Below, one piece after another: positions 1-20,745 of a DNA stretch of 64,000 nucleotides. The translations under genes and the position numbers were made by a program. The notes under the pieces are model-generated. The model saw only the letters and a program-made list of their open reading frames with translations. It searched no databases and had not been told where the DNA came from. The stretch covers positions 17,066,938 through 17,130,937 of the forward strand of contig NC_052146.1 of NCBI RefSeq assembly GCF_902713615.1. Direction: 5' to 3'. The DNA is from Scyliorhinus canicula. Taxonomy: Eukaryota. Numbering within the stretch: the stretch's first letter is position 1; the number at the start of each line of letters is the position of its first letter.

Positions 1-505
1 GTTCGGGGAGGCTGGTACGGAAATTGAACCCGCGCTGCTGGTATTGTTCTACATTACAAGCCAGCTGCCTTAGCCCACTGTGCTAAACCATCAAATCATC
101 CACCGATCTCATTACCTTGGAGCTAAGTTGTGAAGGTGCAGGTGGGTCGCCAATTCTCAATATTCTATAGGAGAAAGAAGAATGGAGCTTCATTTATATA
201 GCACCTTTCAAAACCTGAAGCGGTTTGGACGTGCTTTCCAGCCAGCTAGGTGTTGAAGCATTGTGTCAGGAAAAACCCCCAACTTGCACATTGCAAGTGA
301 TGCTAATCGAGGGATTGATAGTCAAGGATAGCAGAGCGAGCTGTACTGCCCTTCTTCAGAATTGAGCCCTGGGATCTTTCCATCCACATGAGAGGGCGGA
401 TGGGGCCTCAGTGTAATGCCTCTCCCCCCCCCCCTCCCCCCCCCAAGTGATTCACCCTCCCACAGTTGACAACCCCGTGTTAATCAATACCTCTTTCTCC
501 AACAG

Positions 506-677
506 AAATGCCTCCACTGCCGTTTACTGCTGCCGTAACCCAGCCCAGGAAACTCACTTCCAAAACCTTGCGTCTCCTGCCCGGAACTCTGGTATTCCAA
601 ATCCCCGTGACAGCGCTTTCGCTCTACCGGGGAGAGCCAAGCAGAAGCTGCTAAAATACGGAGTAAACCTGCTCTGA
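506..677 (+). CDS. HPS4: HPS4 (BLOC-3 subunit), last coding exon
   Basis: Polypyrimidine acceptor ctctttctccaacag ends at 505. The exon reads (R)[56 protein letters not shown], matching the HPS4 C-terminus as I recall it (…KAKQKLLKHGVNLL). ASPHD2 at the other end of the window supports this by synteny. Confidence 0.9.
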
Positions 678-14630: not shown

Positions 14631-14844
14631 TTAAATGTAACCAATGGCCATGAAAGGTGCACGTAATACACTGACCCCGTGCTCACTGCACGACAGAGGA
14701 TTATTGTCCTGAGAGCATTTCAGTATCAGGGAGAACTCAGTGGTCCCCCCACCATCCATGAAATGTGCCTCCTTCATCATCTTGAAGAGGAACAGAGTAT
14801 CGAAGGCCAGCTCGGACTCTCCATGCTTGTGCCAGGTGGCGTTT
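14631..14844 (-). CDS. Exon 3 (terminal) of the uncharacterised secreted protein
   Basis: Acceptor tctttgtgtttcag; phase 2 matches exon 2. Reads (R)NATWHKHGESELAFDTLFLFKMMKEAHFMDGGGTTEFSLILKCSQDNNPLSCSEHGVSVLRAPFMAIGYI* (TAA). The three exons total 843 nt = 280 aa plus stop. Confidence 0.85.
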
Positions 14845-17447
14845 CTGAAACACAAAGATTGAAGGCGGGATGTGAGTATGATCTGGATATTGGGTGCAGC
14901 TTTCCTGGATTTGTCCTCCAGTTTCCCGAATGTACAGATACCCAGTGGGCAGCGTGTGTTCTCAGATTCAGACAGGAGTCAAAAAGCCTGAGAGAGAATC
15001 TCCCCTTCCAAAAACCTCCTTCCCACGCCGTGCCCTGTTGTGACCCTATTCATCAAATGGCCTTCAGTCAGACTTACATTTTTGTAGTATGAAGACAGGG
15101 AGCCAATGAAATTGATCAAAGATTAGGTGGAGTTAGGGTGGGGGCATGAATTTAGGTAGGGTGCTCTTTAGGCGGCACGGTGGCGCAGTGGTTTGCACTG
15201 CTGCCTTAAGCTGCTGAGGACCCGGGTTCGATCCTGGCCCAGATCACTGTCCATGTGGAGTTTGCACATTCTCCCCGTGTCTGCGTGGGTCTCACCCCCA
15301 CAACCCAAAGATGTGCAGGATTGGTGGATTGGGGAGAATGTACAAACTCCACACGGACAGTGACCCAGGGCCGGGATTGGAACTCGGGCCCTCAGCGCCA
15401 TAGTCCCAGTGCTAACCACTGCACCACCTGGCCACGCCAATTTGCCCCTTAATTGGAAAAAATAATTGGGTTCTCTAAATTAAAAAGAAAGGGTTGGGTG
15501 TCTTTCGGAGGGCACAGACTCGATGGGCCAAATGGCCTCTTTCTGCACTGCTGATTCTATGGTGAAGACAGGCAGCAGATTTTTTTTGTCTCTGGTCTGC
15601 TTCGGTGAATGGATTGATCAGTGGACAATTAGTGCGTGTTCATCGCCAGCCGATGTAAATTGGGTCATTGATGGAGTAGAGGAATTCCCAACTGAGGGAA
15701 GTAGCAATGATTTGACCAGCCAGCTTAAGGGCTACTTTTCAGATCTACTCCTGAGGGCTTCGTAGAGTCCCTACAGTGCAGGAGGCCATTCAGCCCATTG
15801 AGTCTGCTATGACCCTCTGAAAGAGCATCCTAACCTAAGCCCACCCTATCCCCATATAACTGATCGACACTGATGGTCAATTTTTATCATGGCCGATCCA
15901 CCTAACTTGCATGTGTCTTTGGAGCGTGAGAGGAAACCGGAGCATGCAGACACAGGGAGAACTTGCAAACTCCACACAGAAAGTCACCCAAGGTTGGAAT
16001 CAAACCTGGGTCCCTGGCACTGTGAGGCAGCAGTGCTAACCACTGTGCCATTTTCCACTAATCACCACATAACCTTGCCCAATGGGGTGTCCTTGATGAA
16101 GACAATTGGCGAGAAGCCTGTCAATGTTCTTCAAATTGTTAAACTCAGGCAGAGCTTCTGTATATATTTTGGAGAGTGGGTTGGGCTGGAGAGTCCGTGC
16201 CACACAAATACTTAGTTCTGCCAACCAAAGGCAGCACGGTGACGCAGTGGGTTAGCACTGCAGCCTCACGGCGCCAAGGTCCCAGGTTTGATCCCGGCTC
16301 TGGGTCGCTGTCTATGTGGAGTTTGCACATTCTCCCCGTGTCTGTGTGGGTTTCGCCCCCACAACCCAAAGATGTGCAAGCTAGGTGGATTGGCCACACT
16401 AAATTAATTGGAAAAAATGAAGTGGGTACTCTAAATTTTTTTTATTTTTTTTAAAGTTCTGCCAACCAGCTCCCTAGATTTGGGATGTACTATTGCAGGT
16501 GACTGTGCAGTTAACCTTGGGCAAACAGATGCTCAGGAGCAACTTCCAAGTTCTTCTCCAAGCCACACATTGTCCTGACCTTGTCCTTGGACAATATTGG
16601 TACAATATTGGCCATTCCTTCATTGTCACTGGGTGGAAATGTTGGAACACCATCTCTAGCAGCACGGTGGGTGTATCTACTCCTACATGGGCTGCAGCGG
16701 TCCAAGAAGGCAGCTTACCACCAACTCCTCAAGAGCAATTGGGGATGGGCAATAAATGCTGACCTTGCCAACAATGCTCTGAATAAATCAATAGTTTGGT
16801 TTGGAGACCTCAGACATGAATGACTGCCATCCGAGGTCAGGGAACACTTGCAGCGGGCAGCCAGAAAAAGCACACCACGCTCCAACAATGTGACCCGATC
16901 AATTCAAAAAGAAAATCTGGTTTATTGCCATTTTTTTATAATCTTCTCAGACTTTTAGTACCTCTTTCCTCGAGATATATTTCTACAAGCACAAGGCTCC
17001 CTCAGTTACCCTGGCCAAAGGTCATTATCTACGCATAGCTATAGACAAGGAATGTTGTCAGGCTGTTGGGGTCGGTAAGGCATCACAGTGTAGACCAATC
17101 ATCACCCGACGAAGGCAGAAAACATTTCCACCAGTGGTTTCTGGATGGCGAATGGAAACTGCCCTGAACTTTCTCTACCCCAGGGGATGGAAGATTCACT
17201 GTAGATGTCTGTGATCTTTCCCCATAATTCAGGAACTCTGACCGGAAATTAGTTCACAAGAAGGTTCTGAACATTTACTTCAATCTCAAATTGATATTTT
17301 GTATGAATTCTACATTTTTCACTGCAGCATCAACCCAGGGACCCTCCTCCCTCTATGGCTCTGCAGTCCAATCAGATCAATCCCCGGTGACAACGATGGG
17401 GAGTTTTATTACCGGATTGCGATCAACATGGTTTGATGTCTCCTTAC

Positions 17448-17607
17448 CTTGTGGTTTTGCTAACAGTGATGCCCTGCCTTTTTGCCCTTATCTCTGCCTC
17501 CAACACCACCCTGTCTGGGTTGGCAATGTGCACGTGCAGCTGAGCTCGGAGTACGTCCAGATTCAGATACTCTGGCCTCAGGAAGAACTCCATCTTCCTT
17601 TCATTAT
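17448..17607 (-). CDS. Exon 2 of the uncharacterised secreted protein
   Basis: Acceptor ctttcttgtttcccag and donor AG|GTAAGG. 160 nt, phase 1 to phase 2, open frame (H)NERKMEFFLRPEYLNLDVLRAQLHVHIANPDRVVLEAEIRAKRQGITVSKTT(R). Not in the ORF track. Confidence 0.85.
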
Positions 17608-19643
17608 CTGGGAAACAAGAAAGGTGTTTGTGACCATTCGCTCCAGTCCATTTTGCTTCATCTTAAACAGCCCAACTGGTTGCTTTTGTATAAGAAATAT
17701 ATGAATATAATATATCTGAAATGAAGCAGAACGCATTGCATCCAATTGACAAGGATTGAGTCTAAAAGCATTTTATAAAGAGACAACATCTTCATTTTCA
17801 ACTCGTGCATAACCAATCCAAAGCTTTGTTAAAATAAATTTAGAGTACCCAATTATTTTTTTCCAATTAAGGGGCAATTTAGCATGATCAATCCACCTAG
17901 CCTGCACATTTATGGGTTGTCGGGTGAGACCCACGCAGACATGGGGAGAATGTGCAAACTCCACATGGACAGTGACCCAGAGCCGGGATCGAACCTGGGT
18001 CCTCAGCGCTGTGAGGCAGCAGTGCTAACCATTAGGCCATCGTAACCAATCCACAGCTGGCCCATCGTTCCTTTCCATACAAGATCAGAAATGTTTTGTA
18101 CACATGGCCAAGAGGAAAATGTGGTTGTTTTTTGATGTTTCAGAATTTTATATTTACTGATTGAAGCAGCCATTGTACACAATCCAATACCACTGTCCCC
18201 AAATCTCACACCTGGCAATCATTCTCAGGATATTTATGTTACAATAAACTTTCTGCAGCTGTAGAATAACATGTTTCAAAGGAAATTCTTTCCCCAAAGT
18301 CAGTGGTGGAGATTTAAGGCATCAAAGCATTCTTGACTGGAGTTTAAAACCCATCTTGCTCTGCGCCCCTTCCCATATTCTTGCTACACAACCTCTACTT
18401 TCAACACCAGCAGGTTAGCACCGCTGTCTCACAGTACCAGGGACCCTGGGTTCGATTCCTGGCTTGGGTCACTGTCTATGTGGAGTCTGCAGATTGTCTG
18501 CATGGGTCCTCCCAAAGCCCAAAGATGTGCAGGTTATGTGGATTTTGTATAAGAAATATATAAATATAATACATTTGAAACGAAGCAGAACCCATTGTAT
18601 CCAATTGACAAAGATTGAATCTAAAACATTTTATCAAGAAACAACATCTGTGTTCACATCATACATAACCAATCTGAATCTTTTTTTTTGTTTTTTATTT
18701 TATTTTAGAGTACCCAATAATTTTTTTCCAATCAAGAGGCAATTTAGCGTGGCCAATCCACCTAGCTTGCACATTTTTGTGTTGCGGGGTGAAACCCACG
18801 CAAACACATGGAGAATGTGCAAACTCCACATGGACAGTGACCCAGAGCCGGGATCGAACCTGAGACCTCGGCACCGTGAGGCCGCAGTGCTAACCCACTG
18901 CACCACCGTGCTGCCCTCGAATCTTTTTCTTTAAATATAAATTTAGAGAACCCAATTTTTTTTTTCCCAATTAGGGGGCAATTTAGCATGGCCAATCCAC
19001 CTAGCTTGCACATCTTTGGGTTGTGGGGGAAAGACCTAGGCAGACGCTAAATTTGTCCCTTAGTGTCCATTGGGTGGGGTGGGGGATTGGAGCTGGGTAG
19101 GGTGCTATTTCAGAGGGTGGGTGCAGACTCGACGGGCCGAATGGTCTCCTTCTGCACTGTAACGATTCTATCATCCCCTTGGGGCCACTTAACCCCTTGA
19201 CTCTCAATTCCAGTTCCATGTGCGAATTCAACCACCTCCCCCCTCCACAACTTTTCTACACGATCGTTTATTTGTTTAAAAACTCCGCTTGACTATTGCT
19301 GAGAAATGAATGGATGGGGCAGTATCTCACTGATGCCTTCCTCTCCGATTCTAGCTCCAACTCCTTGCCACCCCACCCCAGTAAAAAGCTTTGGGTGCCT
19401 CCTCTCTGTTCACTTCTCAGAAGCTGAGAATGGTAAGTCAACTTACAAATAACTGGCACTATATAAATGCAGTAAGAGGTGGGAGCCACTTCTCTCTGCC
19501 TTCTGCAACCTGAAGGTGCATTTTTCTAATAACTACATAAGGGGATGGTTAAGCTAAGCACAATTATCCAGCTGAGTCCAAACTCCCTGTGCTATTTCTC
19601 AAGCAGAAACTCTAACCCCGCTGCTGTTGTTGCTGATACTTAC

Positions 19644-20112
19644 GCCCAATTAAACGCCCTTGGTAACCTTTTATCCTCTTACACGGGTATCCCAGTTTGC
19701 AACAGATGTAGAAACGCCTCATGAAGACCATCAGGTGCCAGAGTGGGAAGACCTTCCAGGGGGGCTCGGTGGAGGCGGTGGTGACAGTCACCTTGTACAG
19801 GACATGCCTGGAGAGTGAGGCTGGCGAGTGGCTGGCTGCTGATGACCAGCTCTCACTCGACCTGGAGCAGTGAGAGTGCCTCAGCCCGGCCACGGTCTCC
19901 CTCCTGCCCATCCGCTTGTTGCTGCCCCTCTCCCAGGGCTCTTCTTCCCTCAGCTCCATCTCCAGGCTGCTGCTGCTGCCGCCGCTGAGGAACCGGTAGA
20001 GCAGCTCCTCGTCCTCGGGAGGGAAGGAGCTGGTGGGGCTCCCCTGCTGGGGATGGGCAGGCAGGGCCCAGGGGAGCTGCAGCAGGTACAGCAGCAACAA
20101 GGCTCGAAGCAT
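19644..20112 (-). CDS. Exon 1 of an uncharacterised secreted protein (280 aa, TGF-beta-prodomain-like)
   Basis: Kozak-type accATGC at 20112; hydrophobic signal peptide MLRALLLLYLLQLPWALPA; KRMGRR basic site; RRFYICCKLGYPCKRIKG motif; strong donor C|GTAAGT at 19643. 469 nt, ends in phase 1. Confidence 0.88.
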
Positions 20113-20745
20113 GGTCTCTCTCTCTCTCTCCCCCAACAAGTGGCTGCTTCTGCACTGGGAAGGTCACCAGCTTCTAAACTCCTTGCCTGTGGAAGAGACA
20201 GCAGTGATCACTGATCCTCAGACAGAATCATTTATGTTGGTGCCAGGAAGGTATTCCTCTCCCACAAGGGTTTCAGCATTCCCAGGGTGTGTCTGGCCTT
20301 CTGGCGTCCACCCATGTTAAAAGACATTTGCGTATGAATGGGATTGAAAAGCTACAATAAGACTTCTACTTAATGGTTTTCACTGCCGCGCCCCCCCCCC
20401 CCCCCCAAGTGGGGGTTGGCAGCACTTAACAAAATTGGAAACGGTGCTATTGATTTGGGGGAATGAAGCAAATGGAGGTAACATCATTCCAGGTTTGGAG
20501 CTGATTACTAAATCACTTCTTGGTTTACAGCTGGGTTAAACATGGTTACAATGGAGTTTGCACATTCTCCCCGTCTTTGCATGGGTTTTGCCCCCACAAC
20601 CCAAAGACGTGCAGGGTAGGTGGATTGGCCATGCTAAATTACCCCTTAATTGAAAAAAAAAAGAATTGAGTAGTCTTATTTTTAAAAAATATGGTTACAG
20701 AATTATTTGCCCAGATCCCACTTCACAGCCGGCCTCCAGAACGAT

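Follow-up and report, generated by a model that had tools for sequence, protein, structure and literature searches.

Does the catshark genome hold a TGF-beta-family prodomain as a gene of its own, with no ligand half behind it, and if so, what would such a protein do? The question arises from a 64,000-nucleotide stretch of Scyliorhinus canicula DNA (contig NC_052146.1; referred to here as the window), in which a three-exon gene had been predicted, from the DNA letters, to encode a secreted protein that ends where a TGF-beta prodomain would end.

Gene model

Three minus-strand exons splice into one frame of 280 residues, 843 nt in total with the TAA stop included. Coding exon 1 (19644..20112, minus strand, 469 nt) covers residues 1-156 and the first base of codon 157 and contains the signal peptide, a variable N-terminal region, the first conserved cysteine, an extra beta-strand and the alpha2-beta1 block. 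Coding exon 2 (17448..17607, minus strand, 160 nt), entered in phase 1, encodes strands beta2-beta5 with the motifs MEFFL (residues 162-166) and VLRAQLHVH (residues 175-183). Coding exon 3 (14631..14844, minus strand, 214 nt including the TAA at 14633-14631), entered in phase 2, encodes an NAT sequon, beta6 (LAFD, part of LAFDTL at residues 222-227), helix alpha4, beta7 with Cys253, then Cys262 and the last strand APFMAIGY (RAPFMAIGY at residues 271-279). These four motifs lie within one residue of where the original prediction had placed them. The start codon stands in the context ACCATG, and both introns are GT-AG, in phases 1 and 2, with donors GTAAGT and GTAAGG and acceptors ...TTTCCCAG and ...GTTTCAG, each preceded by a pyrimidine-rich tract.

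The spliced product is letter for letter identical with RefSeq XP_038673851.1 (Scyliorhinus canicula); therefore, independent annotation had reached the same model, and the predicted exon number, GT-AG sites, phases and length of 280 residues are all confirmed. NCBI names exactly this protein si:ch211-170d8.2, the name that had been suggested for a similar teleost family. The gene is genuine and already annotated but unstudied, and we found no paper on the family under its placeholder names. In RNA-labelled runs, 0.90-0.92 of the words of exon 1 are present, against 0.39 for a half-exon/half-intron stretch, which is a weak hint of splicing because low-coverage DNA runs show similar shares. An Rfam scan of the whole window gave no match.

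A conserved family of jawed vertebrates

The family is present in sharks, rays, chimaera, lungfish, amphibians (including Xenopus), sturgeon, bowfin and teleosts, and none of the family search matches came from amniotes. Full-length orthologues match at E 1e-21 to 1e-145, which places the gene far beyond chance; a word-indexed search with a shark-only alignment found nothing outside cartilaginous fishes. Most sampled species carry a single copy, and two copies are found in sturgeon and in Xenopus laevis (XB5848002.L and.S). Only placeholder names are in use: si:ch211-170d8.2 in fishes, XB5848002 in Xenopus and numerous "uncharacterized LOC" proteins. The gene tree broadly tracks the species tree, with cartilaginous fishes, amphibians and neopterygians each recovered at support 100.

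The three-exon structure is shared, with identical phases at homologous positions, by S. torazame and two teleosts. The shark exon boundaries (...GYQGRLIG|HNERK and ...SKTT|RNATW) correspond to ...KGIQGRLS|GSHID and ...KLPT|RYSVG in the teleosts, in the same phases. Between S. canicula and S. torazame, the splice sites are shared and the exons are 94-97% identical, against 83-92% for the introns. The dN/dS comparison that had been proposed as a check gave 0.18 overall against S. torazame (0.11 for the C-terminal 180 residues and 0.30 for the N-terminal 100 codons), and purifying selection acts on the gene. Between alpha4 and beta7, ray-finned fishes have an insertion of 40-100 residues rich in Gly, Pro and Arg; sharks, lungfish and amphibians have none.

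Micro-synteny is shared as well. The last exon of a neighbouring gene, at 495-674 (plus strand) of the window, has 58-60% amino acid identity (E about 1e-20) to the teleost neighbour gene, which carries Intu_longin domains; the orientation relative to this neighbour differs between the shark and teleosts. HNF1 or malectin comes next in teleosts, where unrelated genes follow within 3-5 kb.

Protein layout

Residues 1 to about 19 (20056..20112, minus strand) form a signal peptide with a basic residue, a Leu-rich core and a closing ...ALPA. All 22 full-length orthologues have a hydrophobic N-terminus, which upholds the predicted signal peptide. A polybasic motif, KRMGRR (residues 66-71; 19900..19917, minus strand), is a putative proprotein-convertase site, and its sequence makes cleavage there possible. 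It lies 11-16 residues ahead of the first conserved cysteine, is found in the same place in 14 of the 22 orthologues (RRQKR in lungfish, RRWRR or RRFRR in teleosts) and is missing in eight. Upstream of it is an acidic helix-like stretch (EDEELLYRFLSG) that is conserved in cartilaginous fishes; the region upstream of the site as a whole has 15% identity between cartilaginous and bony fishes.

Conservation is highest in residues 116-155 (19648..19767, minus strand), a block made up of a Pro-rich lead-in, helix alpha2 terminating in Cys137-Cys138, then Cys144 and strand beta1 (KGYQGRL). The block matches alpha2-beta1 in the alignments to solved prodomains, and pairwise identity averages 51% across it, against 41% in the arm and about 20% in the N-terminus. 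Six cysteines (82, 137, 138, 144, 253 and 262) are kept in 22-23 of the 23 aligned sequences.

Predicted prodomain fold

The link to TGF-beta prodomains is invisible to sequence methods. The profile check of residues 100-280 against PF00688, suggested with the original prediction, came out negative: there was no match at E<=10 for these residues, the three exons, whole orthologues or 23 family members. Whether run on the exons, on whole orthologues or on the arm by itself, Pfam scans yielded sub-threshold noise only (e.g., TNRC6-PABC_bdg and OstA_2); the family profile found 0 chains at E<=10 among PDB sequences, and family members were all that came up when 1.84 billion proteins were searched exhaustively with a HMMER profile. 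UniProt has automatically named the S. torazame orthologue "TGF-beta propeptide domain-containing protein", which implies a signature match, whereas our PF00688 scan gave none.

At the level of the fold, the picture is different. An AlphaFold2 model built on the 23-sequence family alignment has a pLDDT of 71 overall and about 88 across residues 100-277; with the 7 cartilaginous-fish sequences only, the pLDDT was 41 and the model was unusable. Each of the 37 best matches in a Foldseek search of the PDB belonged to pro-TGF-beta1/2, to pro-activin A or to a BMP9/10 prodomain (best E 2.5e-4), so that the prodomains named beforehand for this comparison (pro-TGF-beta1, pro-activin and BMP9) are indeed among the best matches. 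A Foldseek-independent structure scan of 48,161 chains placed prodomains in all top 5 positions, at a modest margin (Z 8.5-9.9 versus 6.9-7.0 for an unrelated carbohydrate-binding module). Among the 30 best matches in AlphaFold Swiss-Prot, 29 are TGF-beta-family proproteins, matched chiefly over their prodomain part, and PF00688 clusters are also where the ESM Atlas leads, by language-model features and by an independent model alike.

The predicted model contains an alpha2 helix, a beta1 strand and a two-sheet arm-domain sandwich with alpha4. Its C-terminal half of the sandwich, residues 219-279 (14637..14819, minus strand; pLDDT 88-93), aligns with the BMP9, BMP10, TGF-beta1, activin A and myostatin prodomains. 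A further strand at residues 103-112 (19777..19806, minus strand) is modelled with high confidence and is left uncovered by the alignments to solved prodomains, which start at model residues 115-142. Residues 20-99 have a pLDDT of 30-57, and neither the short helix at 33-42 nor the Pro-rich lead-in aligns confidently to solved structures. Modelling thus supports, as originally proposed, the fold of alpha2-beta1 plus the arm domain of a TGF-beta-family prodomain for residues 119 or so to 280.

No ligand half

The frame closes at residue 280, a single residue past the last strand of the arm and without a furin linker. In fold matches this last residue aligns with residue 234 of the TGF-beta1 chain, in agreement with the proposal that the protein stops at the prodomain end; in the numbering of that chain, residue 234 lies about 15 residues ahead of the furin site. 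The precursor layout of PF00688 plus PF00019, in which RxxR is joined to a C-terminal cystine-knot growth-factor domain, is not found. A six-frame search for the cystine-knot pattern came back empty for both the window and the teleost loci, as anticipated, and the 14.6 kb downstream of the gene hold no cystine-knot ORF. All orthologues terminate at the same ...APF-x-A-x-x-Y strand. A newt transcript contig of 1,323 nt, from a gene that spans 7.7 kb in the genome, carries the whole CDS uninterrupted, followed by the stop and 260 nt of UTR.

Probably, then, the locus encodes a conserved secreted protein with a prodomain fold and without a ligand half, under purifying selection. Conservation and the missing cystine knot led us to reject both a truncated ligand gene and a recent pseudogene. 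We infer that the gene's ancestor was a TGF-beta-family precursor whose ligand half was lost, or had never been joined to it, before the jawed vertebrates diverged.

Possible function and alternative explanations

The best-conserved part of the protein is the element that holds the ligand in canonical prodomains, and for this reason we tentatively favour binding through the alpha2-beta1 face. The secreted protein would bind one or more TGF-beta/BMP/activin-type ligands in trans, which would mask or carry the ligand. Such an extracellular trans-regulator is our best guess from the analysis, and a tentative one. The roles put forward with the original prediction (chaperone, decoy, antagonist or a ligand in itself) are likewise conjecture. 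A convertase acting at the conserved polybasic motif may remove the poorly conserved first 50 or so residues after the signal peptide. Strand 103-112 might, in the model, take the place at the edge of the sheet where the ligand normally pairs; if so, this would argue against ligand binding. Broader still, and to be held with similar reserve, is the picture of an ancestral jawed-vertebrate free-standing protein resembling a latency peptide, which regulates ligands in trans or signals itself and was lost in amniotes.

A stand-alone prodomain-fold protein could equally well work with no TGF-beta-family ligand at all, as a signal for its own receptor or as a matrix binder, as has been proposed for Anachronism. 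This reading differs from the best explanation in mechanism only, and we hold it just as tentatively. Among the nearest named clusters by embedding (0.90-0.93) are "protein anachronism" and arthropod "TGF-beta propeptide domain-containing protein", which carry PF00688 with no PF00019 listed; strand 103-112, confident and foreign to solved prodomains, could cap the ligand-binding edge; and carbohydrate-binding modules are the next-best structural matches. Yet conservation peaks at alpha2-beta1, where canonical prodomains hold their ligand, nothing points to another partner, and the link to Anachronism is one of embedding similarity. Another reading is convergence, in which an unrelated secreted beta-sandwich (jelly-roll or carbohydrate-binding-module-like) domain happens to resemble a prodomain. 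We consider this unlikely, given that TGF-beta-family prodomain entries all outrank every other fold in three separate searches and that the match takes in helices alpha2 and alpha4 besides the sandwich. RA(E/Q)L on beta3, FD on beta6 and PF on the last strand also recur, their equivalence being judged by chain order, and language-model features independently indicate PF00688.

Two further readings concern the ends of the protein. The active product could be an N-terminal piece released at the polybasic site, as from a peptide-hormone precursor, with the prodomain-like body as a mere carrier. The position of the motif 10-15 residues ahead of the first conserved cysteine in 14 of 22 orthologues and the retention of the acidic stretch in cartilaginous fishes would fit, but conservation is lowest upstream of the site (about 20% identity family-wide versus 41-51% for the body), dN/dS is 0.30 for the N-terminal 100 codons versus 0.11 for the rest and eight orthologues have no motif; we judge this improbable. 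At the other end, a growth-factor exon might lie further downstream or in an alternative transcript, and indeed the 900 nt downstream of the stop contain neither AATAAA nor ATTAAA. Against this stand the lack of a cystine-knot ORF in the 14.6 kb downstream, the whole window and the teleost loci, the shared C-terminal end of the orthologues, the closed newt mRNA and the last exon of the neighbouring gene at 495-674 on the opposite strand, and the idea is close to refuted.

Significance

Prodomains of the TGF-beta family are known chaperones of their own ligands, which they also target and silence; supplied in isolation in experiments, they can inhibit ligands. If a prodomain occurs naturally as a gene of its own, it would be a new kind of component in one of the best-studied signalling systems and, should the protein regulate ligands in trans or signal by itself, a separate layer of extracellular control. 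The gene has been kept under purifying selection since before the split of cartilaginous and bony fishes, is present in both main anamniote laboratory models, zebrafish and Xenopus, and might help explain differences between fishes or amphibians and mammals in how the TGF-beta family is regulated. The gene itself is no discovery, because it is already annotated, and this annotation together with the UniProt propeptide name on one orthologue lowers the novelty. The new points are the reading of the structure, the range of taxa that have the gene, the conservation of the polybasic site and the identification of the ligand-holding face as the best-conserved part.

Comparison with known systems

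The catshark protein differs from the TGF-beta1/2 LAP and from the BMP9, BMP10, activin A and myostatin prodomains in that it has neither a furin linker nor a cystine-knot ligand. Compared with canonical PF00688 prodomains, helix alpha1 and the latency lasso are not confidently modelled, there is an additional strand N-terminally, alpha2 ends in an added Cys-Cys-x5-Cys cluster, and the family is undetected by the PF00688 HMM. Anachronism, a secreted glial glycoprotein of Drosophila, has been proposed to act without a TGF-beta ligand. It and the arthropod PF00688-only proteins are likewise secreted and are listed with a TGF-beta propeptide domain but no ligand domain, whereas the arthropod proteins are longer (about 350-370 residues) and belong to another phylum, and the likeness is one of embedding similarity only. 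Anti-Mullerian hormone's TGF-beta propeptide-like domain has the prodomain fold, reportedly does not hold the growth factor and is suspected of another role (PMC11831175); compared here by description only, it lies within a full ligand-bearing precursor and forms a disulfide-linked dimer. The catshark gene is a member of the si:ch211-170d8.2/XB5848002 group, with which it has six cysteines, the C-terminus, three exons and the neighbour gene in common.

Gene model and intronic repeats

The catshark gene, encoded on the minus strand at 20112-14631 of the window, is real and already annotated: its three exons are joined by introns of phases 1 and 2 into a frame for 280 aa, and the product is the same at every residue as RefSeq XP_038673851.1, which identifies the window as DNA of the small-spotted catshark. 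Exon 1 (20112-19644, 469 nt) starts at 20112 with the ATG of ACCATG and is followed by a GTAAGT donor. Exon 2 (17607-17448, 160 nt) lies between a pyrimidine-rich tract with AG and a GTAAGG donor, and exon 3 (14844-14631, 214 nt), preceded by a second pyrimidine-rich tract and AG, ends with a TAA at 14633-14631. The original prediction, made from the sequence alone, had coordinates, phases and positions of four prodomain-like motifs that agree with the spliced frame and a motif scan to within one residue, and the name that it suggested, si:ch211-170d8.2, is indeed borne by the RefSeq product. For S. canicula itself the transcript evidence is indirect: 90-92% of the sampled exon 1 words are present in runs labelled as probable RNA.

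In the minus-strand stretch past the stop (scanned from 14631 to 12631), canonical polyadenylation hexamers first occur at +912 (ATTAAA) and +1333 (AATAAA), pointing to a 3' UTR of at least about 1 kb. A (GA)n microsatellite (20113-20135) abuts the ACC ahead of the start codon, and a run of ten G (20391-20400) lies about 280 nt upstream of it. Both introns carry copies of an interspersed repeat, on the minus strand at about 18810-18915, 17945-18040, 15960-16050 and 15335-15430 and in the opposite orientation at about 18420-18540, 16260-16390 and 15190-15330. The copies share a body (...GTCACTGTCCATGTGGAGTTTGCACATTCTCC...) and a head resembling a tRNA (...GGTTAGCACTGCTGCCTCACAG...GGTTCGATCCCGGC...), and have the appearance of a SINE family; they explain the majority of the spurious ORFs in the ORF list. 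An Rfam scan of the whole 64-kb window at gathering thresholds matched no family.

Distribution and descent of the family

Orthologues were collected by a word-indexed search, an exhaustive HMMER profile search against 1.84 billion representative proteins and an indexed search with the broad family alignment. They occur in cartilaginous fishes (sharks, one ray, one skate and one chimaera), in lungfish, sturgeon, bowfin and many teleosts, and in amphibians (one newt, one caecilian and more than 12 frogs, including Xenopus laevis, XB5848002.L/.S, and X. tropicalis). No amniote, jawless fish or invertebrate was found by these three protein searches among the family matches of identifiable source. 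All family matches are annotated as "uncharacterized", and one orthologue bears the automatic UniProt name "TGF-beta propeptide domain-containing protein". Because the catshark protein is in RefSeq and an orthologue has this propeptide-domain name, the sequence itself is not new.

A maximum-likelihood tree, unrooted and drawn by midpoint, recovered cartilaginous fishes, amphibians and neopterygians, each with full support. Most species have one copy (two in sturgeon and two in X. laevis), and these sequence groupings together with the copy number fit a single, vertically inherited gene. Every full-length member closes with a C-terminal strand ...APF-x-A-x-x-Y, and six cysteines (82, 137, 138, 144, 253 and 262 in catshark numbering) are common to full-length members. 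A Gly/Pro/Arg-rich low-complexity insertion of 40-100 residues between alpha4 and beta7 (alignment columns ~325-418) is present in the aligned sturgeon, bowfin and teleost orthologues and absent from those of cartilaginous fishes, lungfish and amphibians; it is longest in the sturgeon copies, which have a near-repeated ...PEDPTPAQ... unit.

The gene structure is conserved as well. The sister species S. torazame has identical splice sites, with 94-97% identity to S. canicula in exons and 83-92% in alignable intron DNA. The dN/dS ratio, suggested as a check alongside the original prediction, is 0.18 overall for this pair (Nei-Gojobori), with 0.30 in the first 100 codons and 0.11 in the remainder, showing that the protein is kept under purifying selection. 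Two teleost orthologues, whose exon structures were solved against annotated proteins, likewise have three coding exons with a phase-1 and a phase-2 intron at positions homologous to those in the shark.

Absence of the ligand half

The cystine-knot spacing was absent from a six-frame regular-expression scan of the 64-kb window, the 25-kb catshark locus and the teleost loci, where the next genes, the unrelated HNF1 and malectin, follow within 3-5 kb. The earlier reading of the gene as prodomain-only therefore stands. A newt contig of 1,323 nt, built from the reads of a sequencing run, contains the whole 253-aa CDS unbroken, then a stop and 260 nt; since the gene spans 7.7 kb in newt genomic DNA, this contig is a spliced mRNA, and it ends without a ligand domain.

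At window 495-674 (plus strand), a 60-codon open frame resembles the last coding exon (58-60% amino acid identity, E ~1e-20) of a gene that adjoins the orthologues in two teleosts and encodes a product of 609-669 aa with Intu_longin_1 and Intu_longin_3 domains; a Pfam scan of these 60 residues alone gave no match. Judged by this sequence match, the neighbourhood is thus conserved between shark and teleosts with a different relative orientation, the two genes being convergent in the shark and in tandem in teleosts.

Predicted fold and probable relation to TGF-beta prodomains

Sequence searches with the family gave no relevant Pfam match at E<=10, no match in PDB and, with the exhaustive HMMER profile across the 1.84 billion proteins, no matches beyond the family. 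We modelled the S. torazame orthologue (277 aa; same 90%-identity cluster as the S. canicula protein) with AlphaFold2 from 23 aligned orthologues, and obtained a pLDDT of 71 overall and of ~88 for residues 100-277. The first 37 chains retrieved by Foldseek from PDB were all pro-TGF-beta1, pro-TGF-beta2, pro-activin A or BMP9/BMP10 prodomains. A Foldseek-independent search of 48,161 representative chains ranked myostatin, BMP10, activin A (twice) and TGF-beta2 prodomains 1-5. Of the 30 best matches among AlphaFold models for reviewed proteins, 29 were TGF-beta-family proproteins, aligned mainly over their prodomains. The ESM Atlas, which relies on a different predictor and on language-model features, also pointed to clusters bearing PF00688, the Pfam TGF-beta propeptide.

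The structural alignments run from the alpha2-equivalent helix through the last residue, and their range places the protein end near residue 234 of the latency peptide in TGF-beta1 numbering; the TGF-beta1 furin site lies about 15 residues beyond. Assigned by chain order to the secondary structure of the model, MEFFL, VLRAQLHVH, LAFDTL and RAPFMAIGY probably correspond to beta2, beta3, beta6 and the last strand. True homology to TGF-beta prodomains, not convergence, is in our view very probable.

The most conserved block is not the arm (41% identity) but the Pro-rich lead-in, helix alpha2 with Cys-Cys-x5-Cys and strand beta1 (51% for this whole block); the N-terminus has ~20%. In 14 of 22 orthologues, a polybasic motif precedes the first conserved cysteine by 10-15 residues. 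Sharks have KRMGRR, lungfish RRQKR and many teleosts either RRWRR or RRFRR; the motif may be a convertase site at which the poorly conserved N-terminal 50 residues are trimmed off.

Possible function and comparison with known systems

The zebrafish and Xenopus gene names are mentioned in none of the 8.4 million full texts searched, and the literature searches turned up no account of a stand-alone prodomain family in vertebrates. Based at present on a predicted fold, a free-standing prodomain gene would come as a genuine surprise in TGF-beta research, and zebrafish and Xenopus both allow direct testing.

Our analysis shows a secreted-type, cysteine-rich and ligand-less protein with a predicted prodomain fold. 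After removal of the signal peptide, and perhaps convertase trimming, it would work extracellularly. In canonical procomplexes, the elements of the most conserved block (lead-in, alpha2 and beta1) hold the growth factor (compare the commentary PMC11831175). The family protein might bind TGF-beta-family ligands in trans and so mask, carry or chaperone them, with its conserved alpha2-beta1 face as the contact surface, a tentative proposal that we consider possible but somewhat doubtful. A ligand-independent role of the type of Anachronism, an arthropod secreted protein, would be an equally tentative candidate; the ESM Atlas matches include arthropod "protein anachronism" clusters with the propeptide domain and no ligand domain listed. 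Other roles take the remaining probability. The extra strand confidently predicted at 103-112, which precedes alpha2 and might block the ligand edge, has no counterpart in the solved TGF-beta-family prodomains.
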